Shown here piece after piece: positions 1-18,730 of a DNA stretch of 64,000 nucleotides. The notes below the pieces were generated by a model. That model saw only the letters and a program-made list of their open reading frames with translations. It did not search any database and had not been told where the DNA came from. The stretch is from Amphiscolops sp. MND2022 (Eukaryota). Each line of letters opens with the position of its first letter. Positions within the stretch are counted from its first letter, which is position 1. The stretch is from NCBI GenBank assembly GCA_964187785.1, contig OZ076412.1, positions 30,318,001-30,382,000 on the forward strand, written 5' to 3'. The position numbers were made by a program, and so were the translations under genes.

Positions 1-121
1 CGAGTTCGACTGAATCACGTCTTTAGTTTCAAAACCAAAAAATGTGTATGAGCTTTGTTTTTGTCCATATTCTATGAAATCACAAATAAATTTGTTTGTG
101 AGGAAGCTGATACTAATTTAG

Positions 122-1215
122 GCATGGACTACTGGCAGTATGACACCATTGTGTTCACCTTCAAATTCAAACGTCACCCCACATTTTATGTGAACGTACT
201 TCTCTTGCCTTCTATCATGATGGCCTTTCTATCCATCCTCTGCTTCCTGCTTCCAGTCGAGAGTGGGGAGAAAGTGTCGCTGGGAATTACAGTTTTGCTA
301 TCTCAAGCTGTTCAACTTCTAGTGTTATCAGATGTGTTGCCACCCTCTTCCAAAGATTTCCCAATTCTCGCACAATTCGTGGTCTTTACAATTGTGCTGA
401 TTTCAGGGGTGTAAAAATTTCGACCTGTCGTATTGACAGTCGGCCAACTCGAAGCCCCGATATTTTGAGAAAAAATAAAATGAACCTGATTCATGAATTT
501 CAGAAAAAGCTGAAGTTCCAATATCCGCAAAAGTTGGTTCAATACTCATAGTTGGTTGATGAACATCAAGTAATTTCGGTTTCAATTTTTCAACATTTGC
601 TACTAGTTACCAGAAATCACTACAAATTATTGACACTACAAGTATTTGTTAGGTCGAATAAAAACACTGGAAAACACTTGAATATTAATTTTGTTATATT
701 TAGCTTTTTTGTGCAGATTTCTACATTCTAGATATTTCGACATAGATGTTTTGTAGGTAAAACTAAATTTTACACCACTACGTGGTATGGTATCAGTCTC
801 AGTCGTGACGTCAGTGCTAGTTGTTCGAACTTATCTCACTCCGGAGTGTAAAACTTTTCCTCCACTGGGCGTGAAAGCTGTAAATTCCTACATTATGAAG
901 CTACTTCTCATTCCAACTCTCGATGAAAAAGTTCTCGGAGACGGTCAAAAGCATCAGAAAAGTCGAAAAAAGAGCTCCAATCAAATATCACCTCAGTTTA
1001 AGGCGGCCGAAGCCTCGAGAGTTCAGAGAGGAAATGTAGCTGAAGATAATATACAAAGCAGTGATGTTGACACAATGTCTGAAGATGACAAGAAATTGCG
1101 AAATACTCTGGGCTGGAAACTTTTATCAGAGCTAATTGACCGTTTTGTTCTGATCTTGTACATTACAGCCTTGACGGGTGGATCTATTTACTACATTGTG
1201 GCGCTTTTAACATGA
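122..1215 (+). CDS. Nicotinic acetylcholine receptor-type (cation-selective Cys-loop) subunit, 3' exons encoding M1-M4; the ligand-binding domain lies upstream of the window
   Basis: Exon from acceptor ttag|122: YDTIVFTFKFKRHPTFYVNVLLLPS (pre-M1/M1), LPVESGEKVSLGITVLLS (M2), DVLPPSSKDFPILAQFVVFTIVLIS (M2-M3). Resumes at ~757-797 with VSVVTSVLVVRTY (end of M3), an intracellular loop, and WKLLSELIDRFVLILY (M4), stop at 1215. M3 is interrupted by a ~390-bp insert. Confidence 0.93.
404..780. mobile_element. hAT-type MITE inserted in the nAChR M3 coding sequence, candidate transposon-derived intron
   Basis: Left end CAGGGGTGTAAAAATTT (404-420); right end AAATTTTACACCACTA (765-780) is its degenerate reverse complement. 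The left end matches the TSD-flanked MITE at 11208 at 16 of 17 nt. No clean TSD. Confidence 0.75.
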
Positions 1216-11207: not shown

Positions 11208-11729
11208 CAGAGGTGTAAAAATTTATATTGTATTGCAATATATTGCAATTAAATACAATTAATATATTTATTTAGTTGGAGCAAAAATACAATATATTTA
11301 TTGAAATAAGAGAAATATTGTCAGAGCACTACAATATTTTGCGCAAAAAGTTTATGCAATATAGAAATAAAACTTCATTTAATATGCATTTTAAACGGAC
11401 CTCCAATTCTTCCTGCCAACAAATATGACTGGGTGCCTGGGACTTCCAACTTAGCGGTACGACTTTTCAGCCATGCTCGATTCACCCTTCCTGACTACCG
11501 CAAGGAAACGCTTCCTATTAATTTCGAGAGTGTATTATACAAATAGACAACATTGGGATGTTTGCCTTGTAAATGAATGTTTCTCTGCCCAATAAATAAT
11601 TTCACAATTTATTGTTTTTCTAAAATATTGCAGGACAATAAATACAATATTTTTATTGCTGAAATTGAACCAAACAATATATTTATCTTTTTGAAAAAAT
11701 ATACTTAAATACAATATTTCACACCCCTG
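11208..11729. mobile_element. hAT-superfamily MITE (522 bp)
   Basis: TIRs CAGAGGTGTAAAA / TTTCACACCCCTG with a perfect 8-bp TSD ATGACGTC (11200-11207 and 11730-11737). Confidence 0.92.
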
Positions 11730-11815
11730 ATGACGTCACCAATCAAATCTATATAACGACTGAATTCGATTTTCATTAGAAGGGCGGTACAATTGATAGG
11801 TCTATAAAATAAAAC

Positions 11816-16930: not shown

Positions 16931-18730
16931 ATGGATGCGGCTAATGAAGAAATTGGTCAGATGGATCTGCAATCAAGCCAGCATTTTGCTCAATTGCAAC
17001 GAGATTTCGGAGATCGTCTCAACGAAGAAATGACTTCACAAGTTCAAGCATGGGAATCAACTCAAGTAAATATAGCTGTCATAGGCGAAACATCTGTGGG
17101 CAAATCTTCTCATATCAATGCGCATTTTGGAAGTTATGTCTGCATCGTCGGTCATTCTGGAAACGTTACCCAAGAGGTGACCCCTTATGGACAAACCGGG
17201 CGCATGACTGGATCTAATCCAGGGATATTGAAATGATTATTTTTGAACGATAGTTTCATTGATTGTTCAGAGTCTATTCCTAGAGACTACATTGCAACAT
17301 TTTTCTCTGAAGCTTAGCTATACTAGAATGACCTATTGGTCAACTTAAGGTAACTCTTAGAAGCATCCCGATTGCACTGAAAAATGTTTCCAACATAGAA
17401 AAAAAACGCACTAAGGATTGCTTCAGTGGAATTTGGAATTGATCATCAGAGAACTCCCAATAAACATCAGAGATGTTTGAACTTTTGTGTTTCTGAAATA
17501 TTTTTCGATTCTTGAATTGTATTTCATTTTTGTTGGCTTTTCAATTGTATCAACGAGAGACGGAATCATCAATTTTTCACTTTGATCATCATACTCACTT
17601 TGATCGTTTTCCAATATATTTTTTGAAATCCCTGATTCAATTGAGACACGGATCGATCGGAAGTTTTGGTGTTTTGGGATCTGCCTGGATTCAACACTAT
17701 GGACTACAATAAAGAAACATATAATGGGGTTGTGAAATTAGACCGATATCACTTCTTTTTAATCGTTACTGACAAAATTTTCACCCATGATATTCATTGG
17801 CTTCTGGGCGAAATTCTTCGACGTAATAAGAAATTTTTTCTAATTCGCACCAAGATTGATCAAGCTGTCGAGAGTGCAAGGAAGCATCCTCCCAGACAAA
17901 GTCGGGAGGAAGTTATGGCAGAAATTAGGGGTAAAATTGAAGGAGATCTTAGGAAGAGTTTAGAGGTGTTCAAACGCCAAAACCCCAACGTGAGCTATGC
18001 ATACGACCCCAACTATTTCAAAGTATATTTTGTTGACAACTATGATCCCTCAGATTACGATTTTCGTCAGTTGCGCGAAGATATTTGGGCGTCAATGACT
18101 TCTTTGCAAAAAGAGGTGTATCTAATGCAATGCAGGAGCTACACGGCGCAAATGCGAGATGAAAAATACAAAAACTTCAAATGGAGAATCCCCAAAATCG
18201 CTGCTGGTTCAGCTGCCGGGGCTCCAATTCCGGGAAGCACTTTGCTGTTTGACATTCCCCTGATCACGTATGAAGTATTGCAATACATGAAAGCATTTGG
18301 CGTTGATAAGCAAACAATCCGTGAGATGGAAGTCGACGCTGGATTTGATCCCGGGAGAGTTGAGGATCCATTCGCTAACTTCTTGAAAAGATCTCATAAA
18401 GCTCTATACACGATTCGCGAGACGATTGGCGAGCAGAGATCTGTCACAGTGCCGGGTTTGAGACATCTGGCTCCAATGATACTCGGGGCTCTTTCACTGA
18501 TTGCTGTATCTGGCACTGTCGAAACAACTGCCGAGGCTGCTGTTCCCGTTGTAGGAGTTGCTGTGGCATCTCTTCTCTCATTCGGCACATCTTCAACGCA
18601 ACTCTATTGGCGTAAGTTTTCACCTTCCTTGCAGCTCATTGATTCTTCCTTTTTTGCAGAGAGATGGCATTATACGGTAAAAGCAACATCATTATTTTCC
18701 GTGTTCTGTGCTACTGGAAAATCTTTTTAA
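16931..18730 (+). CDS. Interferon-inducible GTPase (IRG/p47, IRGC-like), coding sequence interrupted by a 423-bp insert; 3' end uncertain
   Basis: G1 NIAVIGETSVGKSSHINA, switch I VTQEVTPY, G3 VFWDLPG, YHFFLIVT, G4 FLIRTKID, and C-terminal AAGSAAGAPIPGSTLLFD helices, all typical of IRG proteins. A GTAAGT donor at 18612 means the true last exon may differ from the read-through ORF. Confidence 0.85.
17220..17634. mobile_element. Old hAT-type MITE (415 bp) inside the IRG coding sequence between G2 and G3
   Basis: Ends CAGGGATATTGAAA / TTTGAAATCCCTG. Degenerate 8-bp TSD ATCTAATC (17212-17219) vs ATTCAATT (17635-17642), 5/8 with three C/T transitions. Removing element plus one TSD (423 nt) fuses the two IRG ORFs in frame. 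Confidence 0.65.

Follow-up and report, generated by a model that had tools for sequence, protein, structure and literature searches.

Can a gene whose third transmembrane helix is split by a transposon still encode a complete ion-channel subunit? The question is raised by a stretch of 64,000 nucleotides from Amphiscolops sp. MND2022 (GenBank assembly GCA_964187785.1, contig OZ076412.1, positions 30,318,001 to 30,382,000 of the forward strand), hereafter the window, near the start of which the coding sequence of a receptor subunit resembling the nicotinic acetylcholine receptors (nAChR) is interrupted in the middle of transmembrane helix M3 by an element with hAT-type ends. We propose that this interruption is a transposon-born intron, predicted to be spliced at CAG/GG...AG (a slash marks a splice junction), in one paralogue of the receptor family, and we put the probability of this reading at about 0.6. 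The evidence that favours it is indirect: the gene is intact, its branch shows purifying selection, the insertion looks old, and the same CAG/GG boundary geometry recurs in other genes of the genome. An earlier reading of the window from its sequence alone had left the choice between a transposon-born intron with a GG donor, a canonical intron that remodels the helix, and a disrupted allele; the first of these is now preferred, while the other two stand as rivals and are weighed below.

The receptor gene and the element within M3

With all five of its interruptions removed, the gene has an open reading frame (ORF) of 450 codons that runs from a signal peptide through the Cys-loop (CSFNVRLFPFDTQEC) and M1-M4, the parts missing from the window lying within 4.6 kb upstream of its 5' end. 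The upstream exons were traced with an nAChR of the acoel Convolutriloba macropyga (P0003), taken from a protein search, as the guide; residues 20-449 of the translated gene align to residues 22-449 of this protein with four gaps (E ~1e-138), and the closest named homologues, at 42-60% identity, come from the same acoel. Exon 5 matches the Pfam family Neur_chan_memb (1.1e-17). With a ligand-binding domain and four transmembrane helices, the predicted product is a Cys-loop ligand-gated channel subunit of nAChR-like type; it looks like a non-alpha subunit, with no vicinal cysteine pair seen in its sequence.

Exon 5 ends in ...FPILAQFVVFTIVLIS, followed by the G of a split valine codon. If the element is retained, the frame reads ...FTIVLIS, then GV, and then terminates at TAA 412-414; on the 3' side of the element the sequence is open again in this frame from ...VSVVTSVLVVRTY... 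to the stop codon of the gene. The element itself is bounded by inverted-repeat arms (405-419 and 765-779) that are complementary at 13 of 15 positions, and in a terminal inverted-repeat test its score was reached by 2-3 of 300 shuffles. Both ends have the YARNG start of hAT terminal repeats (CAGGG... on the left and, in reverse complement, TAGTG... on the right), and the left end agrees at 16 of 17 positions with a terminal inverted repeat (TIR) whose pattern, CAGRGGTGTAAAAATTT, has 216 exact matches in the 1.07-Gb genome versus none for the reversed control. The hAT-type inverted-repeat element first noticed in mid-M3 is thus borne out. The first three bases of the left repeat (CAG) remain in the proposed exon, while the right terminus reads ...CACCACTA and has diverged from the ...CACCCCTG of the family.

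The initial designation of the element as a miniature inverted-repeat transposable element (MITE), taken to mean a family with many copies, did not survive comparison with the genome. Searched against the whole assembly the element matches only itself, with no relative at ~80% identity or more, whereas the same search with a young hAT element as control returns 575 candidates, down to 79% identity; a comparison with 30 members of the related TIR family showed no similarity outside the 17-nt end. A recognisable 8-bp target-site duplication is likewise missing from its flanks, where the left GCTGATTT (396-403) and the right CGTGGTAT (781-788) match at 4 of 8 positions, although this is compatible with decay. 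The right flank also holds a tandem duplication, TGGTA TGGTA (783-792), after which comes the first AG 3' of the right repeat (795-796). These features describe a solitary, old-looking, non-autonomous hAT-type element, which strictly speaking does not belong to a MITE family. Its insertion does not look recent, to judge from the decayed target duplication, the diverged right terminus and the lack of relatives in the genome.

The family that carries the matching terminal repeat offers a measure of what young insertions look like. Thirty copies of the CAGAGGTGTAAAAATTT family were fetched and the mate end was identified in 25 of them; the elements are ~460-500 nt long and end in ...CACCYCTG, and 22 of the 25 have target duplications that match at 7-8 of 8 positions. 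As most copies retain such duplications, the terminal repeat type of the M3 element belongs to active hAT-type elements, and hAT transposition looks recent in this genome. A MITE of this type lies within the window itself (11209-11734), its family yielding 575 search candidates at 79-96% identity. The M3 element shares with these young MITEs its first 17 bases (16 of 17), its size class (~380-530 nt) and the lack of coding capacity; they have hundreds of copies with perfect 8-bp duplications, whereas its interior is unrelated to theirs and its right terminus has diverged.

Empty sites, constraint and the other introns of the gene

The genome holds at least 115 loci that match the M1-M3 exon, some of them with internal stops. 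The expansion of Cys-loop receptors is partly tandem, for example at C2:83.77-83.84 Mb, C1:58.07-58.15 Mb and C4:2.1-2.4 Mb. The six closest paralogues (L005-L010, 67-85% identical over M1-M3) read ...IVLIS(I/V)SVV... without a break, and when the interrupted gene is aligned to them its two halves abut to the base at the exact site of the 390-nt interruption; none of the six has an intron at the insertion point. The comparison of paralogues for an empty site, which had been put forward as a check, thus gave the same answer six times out of six. Because all six are uninterrupted at this codon, the interruption is a lineage-specific insertion on the branch of this gene and not an old intron.

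The selective history of that branch was assessed by counting the changes unique to each gene over 112 codons of M1-M3. The terminal branch of the interrupted gene has 21 synonymous and 8 non-synonymous changes, compared with 20:11 for L005 and 15:21 for L006, a pattern that indicates strong purifying selection on the branch bearing the insertion, which is at least as constrained as those of its paralogues. An unconstrained ORF of 1.35 kb would hardly stay open over the time that the decay of the element implies.

Read data on the locus came from four DNA-type runs of one sample. Both haplotypes carry the element in these runs, which contain no DNA joint that skips either interruption. The heterozygous coding single-nucleotide polymorphisms (SNPs) of the gene comprise three synonymous and one non-synonymous change, small counts in themselves, and all other variants fall within intron 4 or the element, so that exons 5-6 contain none. 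Four heterozygous SNPs fall within 62 nt of coding sequence in exon 4 (L004:537-598; three synonymous, one Gly/Ser), and heterozygosity is locally high around this segment in the sequenced animal. The ORF also occurs on a contig in ENA, which shows 100% identity over 12.4 kb and is hence not independent, and a protein search for an orthologue elsewhere, made with the gene-specific C-terminal part, returned only the ORF of the window.

The remaining introns of the receptor gene, which lie between window positions -4571 and 121 at loci L066 and L004, differ in age. Intron 3 is the only ancestral one, being the single intron of the acoel gene and the sole intron of L005, while introns 1, 2 and 4 are missing from both; introns 1 and 4 are GC-AG introns that share AG/GCATG. 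The ends of intron 2 form a perfect inverted repeat of 10 nt (GGTTGAAAAT and ATTTTCAACC) with a score reached by 2 of 300 shuffles, whereas the ancestral intron 3 has none (119 of 300 shuffles reach its score). A direct repeat, AGGCATG, at both junctions of intron 4 (885 nt) had suggested a second recent insertion, a possibility that we rejected: at this codon the paralogue L006 is interrupted as well, by an intron that likewise has a GC donor, and intron 4 is for this reason an older, real intron. It contains a ~39-nt stretch with roughly ten-fold contig depth and many loose ends (L004:959-997, window ~-418 to -380), which is an embedded high-copy repeat fragment. Elsewhere in the family, L011 (G000:C1:58151576-58154812) is interrupted where M3 begins by a GT-AG intron of 1240 nt (CCGG/GTTTAT...GTCACAG/TA), a further lineage-specific intron within the ancestral exon that also received the M3 element. 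A junction survey of 30 receptor loci was too noisy, at their 40-50% identity, to be of use. Introns are thus gained frequently in this lineage, and the gain often leaves transposon marks.

Splice routes, boundary geometry and rival explanations

All in-frame, stop-free pairs of donor and acceptor were enumerated across the interruption. Removal of 407-796 gives ...FTIVLISVSVVTSVLVVRTY (...LISVSVVTSV...) and the same number of M3 residues as in the paralogues, so that the gap-free helix first proposed by comparison with a standard M3 now stands verified against real family members. It leaves the length unchanged and the frame restored, at a junction with GG-AG in place of the standard GT/GC...AG dinucleotides, and its 390 nt equal the 377-nt element plus the 8-nt target duplication and the later 5-nt duplication, shifted 3 nt rightward. 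The enumeration also confirmed the pair GT409...AG756 (348 nt), in frame with 14 extra residues, as the only in-frame, stop-free canonical pair with a GT at the edge of the element; upstream GT donors at 379, 382 and 394 pair in frame with AG756 but remove part of M3. The sequence-only reading was also right that the TGGTA duplication is what brings the canonical pair into frame: before it arose, GT409-AG756 shifted the frame and GG-AG was the only in-frame route. Judged on the standard consensus, CAG/GGGUGU would fit the usual U1 register at seven of nine positions, and we infer that the spliceosome of this animal uses the GG donor at M3.

The same arrangement of element and splice site is found in other genes of the genome. 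An IIGP/IRG-type GTPase gene in the window yields an ORF of 458 codons only on removal of 17223-17645 (CAG/GGATAT...CAATTGAG/), a predicted intron of 423 nt that equals a 415-nt element plus 8, and no in-frame GT-AG alternative exists for it. In a survey of actin paralogues, with an intronless copy as the ruler, ~18 of 23 introns are plain GT-AG, and two divergent but open paralogues contain introns of the types GG-AG, GA-AG and GC-AG, in which hAT-like inverted repeats start at CAG/G and for which canonical alternatives are absent or alter the length of conserved actin segments. Counting M3 and the GTPase gene, 5-6 of the 7 non-GT introns show inverted repeats starting at -3/-2 relative to the donor, versus none of 11 GT-AG controls; the clearest (CAGGCAAGGATTGTCACAAA, 18 of 20) is matched by none of 300 shuffles. 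The acceptor is the first AG past the right arm in every non-GT case, 7-11 nt from the end of the arm, and the 16 nt seen at M3 correspond to 11 plus the 5-nt duplication. A general relaxation of the donor was rejected as an explanation because ~18 of the 23 actin introns are plain GT-AG and the odd donors accompany hAT-like ends. One actin GG-AG intron lies at the same codon phase as a GT-AG intron of the paralogues L074 and L075. At an HSP70 locus (G000:C6:29808557-29809951), where Pfam positions 54-510 are matched, there are two in-frame TGA codons, and this may be another exonic interruption.

Several observations weigh against a GG-donor intron at M3. GG donors are very rare in well-studied spliceosomes, and a good-looking canonical pair inside the element (GGG/GTGTAA, TGTTTTGTAG/G) should compete. 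The gene belongs to a family of at least 115 loci in which dead copies are to be expected, and the GTPase and the divergent actins likewise come from multi-copy families, their introns being predicted from DNA sequence. The poor target duplication could mean a messy insertion and not age; duplications as poor are seen in only ~2 of 25 young elements from the related family. The minimum-energy RNA fold leaves the two repeats unpaired (z = -1.4), and for this reason the idea that splicing of the M3 intron is assisted by structure was dropped.

The competing canonical pair is the basis of one rival explanation, in which the interruption is removed solely by GT409...AG756 and the mRNA keeps 42 extra bases, so that GVKLNFTPLRGMVS in mid-M3 yields a remodelled or non-functional subunit. 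Its sites (GGG/GTGTAA and GATGTTTTGTAG/G) resemble confirmed donors and acceptors of this genome, and the route is in frame and stop-free owing to the TGGTA duplication; an in-frame, stop-free run of 14 codons nevertheless has a chance probability of ~0.17 and is not evidence of selection. It would insert K, N, P and R into the middle of a helix for which six paralogues hold a fixed length, and the route was frameshifting before the duplication, yet the gene stayed under purifying selection. Given also that the GTPase gene with the same geometry has no in-frame canonical alternative, and the actins none or length-changing ones, we regard the exclusive use of this pair as decidedly improbable. 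Unlikely too, in our judgement, is a dead or dying copy, in which a transposon hit one member of the family and the flanking frames are open because too little time has passed. The size of the family, the internal stops in some of its members and the TAA 6 nt into the element are all consistent with such a copy, and the frame would be restored exactly by the removal of any element together with its target duplication. Against this stand the signs that the insertion is not recent (a 4/8 duplication with an indel, the diverged right terminus and the lack of genomic relatives), the integrity of all six coding segments over 450 codons, the 21:8 ratio on the terminal branch, the segregating variants that avoid exons 5-6, and the presence of the insertion on both haplotypes.

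Somatic excision by a hAT transposase would remove the interruption from the DNA itself and dispense with splicing. Young hAT elements with the same terminal repeat type do appear active, with mostly perfect target duplications, but the decayed termini and target duplication of the M3 element would make it a poor substrate for recognition by transposase. hAT excision leaves footprints and would not reliably restore a reading frame, and no joint that skips the element occurs in the DNA contigs of the sequenced animal; we give this explanation hardly any credence. The transposon-born intron with a GG donor remains the reading that we prefer, and the features on which it is based are collected in Table 1.

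Table 1. Features of the receptor gene, the M3 element and related loci. Positions are those of the window unless a genomic locus is given; negative positions lie 5' of the window.
Feature	Position	Strand	Description and basis
Intron 1, GC-AG	-4394..-3990		CAG/GCATGT
Intron 2, GT-AG	-3865..-2471
Intron 3, GT-AG	-2297..-939
Intron 4, GC-AG	-763..121 (3' end 1..121)	+	AAAG/GCATGC...TAATTTAG/GC; L005 continuous here; L006 has a GC-AG intron at the same position
Exon 5	122..406	+	pre-M1, M1, M2, first half of M3; translation, Pfam, 85% identical to paralogue L005
Left terminal inverted repeat	404..420	+	CAGGGGTGTAAAAATTT; 16/17 identical to CAGAGGTGTAAAAATTT hAT MITE family
hAT-type non-autonomous element, single-copy in sequence	404..780	+	377 nt; TIR arms
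Intron 5, proposed GG-AG	407..796	+	CAG/GGGTGT...GGTATCAG/TC; 390 nt; removal restores M3
Rival canonical GT-AG intron	409..756	+	GGG/GTGTAA...TGTTTTGTAG/GT; 348 nt; leaves 14 extra residues GVKLNFTPLRGMVS
In-frame TAA	412..414	+	stops translation if the element stays; translation
Right terminal inverted repeat	765..780	+	AAATTTTACACCACTA; end diverged from the family's ...CACCCCTG
Decayed right copy of target duplication, TGGTA tandem duplication, CAG	781..796	+
Exon 6	797..1215	+	second half of M3, cytoplasmic loop, M4, stop TGA 1213-1215; translation, tblastn to paralogues and P0003
Young hAT MITE	11209-11734		CAGAGGTGTAAAAATTT...CACACCCCTG; perfect 8-bp duplication ATGACGTC
IIGP/IRG-type GTPase gene	16931-18730		458-codon ORF; Pfam
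Single-copy hAT-like element in the GTPase gene	17220-17634		ends CAGGGAT.../...ATCCCTG
Six-exon actin (L080, L082, L083)	G000:C2:4329500-4352617	-	introns CAG/GGATCT..., CAG/GGATGG..., AAG/GAAAGA...
Actin L072	G000:C8:48474900-48477900		introns AAG/GGATTT..., CAG/GCAAGG...

A model for intron birth and its relation to known systems

Our observations suggest a model in which a non-autonomous hAT-type transposon inserted into the exon encoding M3 and was later kept as an intron. The ends of hAT elements read CAGGN...; the CAG would stay exonic and the intron would begin at the fourth base of the repeat, with donor position +2 being whatever base the repeat carries there (G, C or A). At M3 the pre-mRNA would be cut after the first three bases of the repeat (…UUUCAG/GGGUGU) and, the other end of the repeat (CTG) being unfit as an acceptor, rejoined at the first AG downstream of the right repeat (…GGUAUCAG/UC). 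Where the distance from the 8-bp duplication to that AG is 3 nt, the intron would equal the element plus the duplication (at M3 with the later 5 nt as well) and the length of the mRNA would be kept; because the host bases at the M3 site are also CAG, the mRNA would be identical to that of the uninterrupted gene. A broader proposition, for which we consider the odds to be even, is that the host spliceosome accepts CAG/GN, that an exonic hAT element with an AG 3 nt past its duplication would be born as a working intron, and that this is a continuing, genome-wide source of introns in a bilaterian. If CAG/GN is indeed accepted, M3 would be a paralogue-specific example in which the empty sites are still visible.

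The gain of introns in animals is a long-standing open question, and its successive steps can be compared in this gene and its relatives: in the paralogues the site is empty, the M3 element is an old transposon whose hAT ends are still recognisable, and GG-AG alone restores the frame exactly. Its older introns may represent later stages, with GC-AG boundaries and the remnant of a terminal repeat. Were the junction confirmed, the genome would offer an animal system for the birth of introns from hAT elements and for the study of a spliceosome that tolerates G in place of T at donor +2, and many genes here would be wrongly annotated as broken by predictors that allow only GT/GC-AG boundaries.

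A possible parallel for the donor is Oikopleura dioica, which is reported (Denoeud et al. 2010) to have G*-AG introns (GA, GC or GG) with G at +1, a free +2 and a normal AG; these are not known to be linked to hAT terminal repeats. In the literature on acoels nothing was found on non-canonical splicing or on Introners, the spliceosomal introns derived from DNA transposons in Micromonas, Aureococcus, Symbiodinium and others (Gozashti et al. 2022, PMC9860276; reviewed in PMC11282704). Like the M3 element, Introners are short and non-autonomous, have inverted ends and a target duplication, land in exons and leave the length of the mRNA unchanged; the element itself supplies one of their splice sites, and the second is provided by the duplicated target or lies next to it. 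Rare donors are a further likeness, with GC and GA reaching 50% and 40% in some families (PMC9860276). Introners are, however, multi-copy families by definition, whereas the M3 element has no relative at ~80% identity or more; its GG donor is absent from the listing in PMC9860276, and it differs also in its hAT ends and its animal host, Introners having been found in only two animal groups by that large survey.

An animal parallel is the tunicate Fritillaria borealis, which has non-canonical introns derived from MITEs, with AG-AC/AG-AT ends prevailing, and an adapted spliceosome (Henriet et al. 2019 in PMC11282704; PMC13326754). As in the present genome, most intron positions described there as species-specific accompany a small number of old GT-AG introns whose positions are conserved; the new introns are inferred to have arisen from miniature transposons, and the spliceosome is thought to be tolerant and so to neutralise insertions. 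The ends differ, since in the present genome the 3' end is invariably AG and donor +2 alone varies (GG, GC, GA), and GT-AG is still the majority here (~18 of 23 actin introns); splicing was demonstrated in F. borealis by experiment, while the introns described here are predicted from the genome. The nonconventional introns of euglenids resemble the M3 case in their transposon-like inverted ends with CAG...CTG, in junction repeats that look like target duplications and in the lack of a polypyrimidine tract (PMC11282704, PMC12501133). Their ends must pair in the RNA and their junctions are without G...AG, whereas at M3 the repeats are unpaired in the predicted fold and the ends are G...AG. What sets the M3 case apart from the known systems is that its ends are of hAT type, that its donor is GG, that the sequence is single-copy, and the host in which it occurs.

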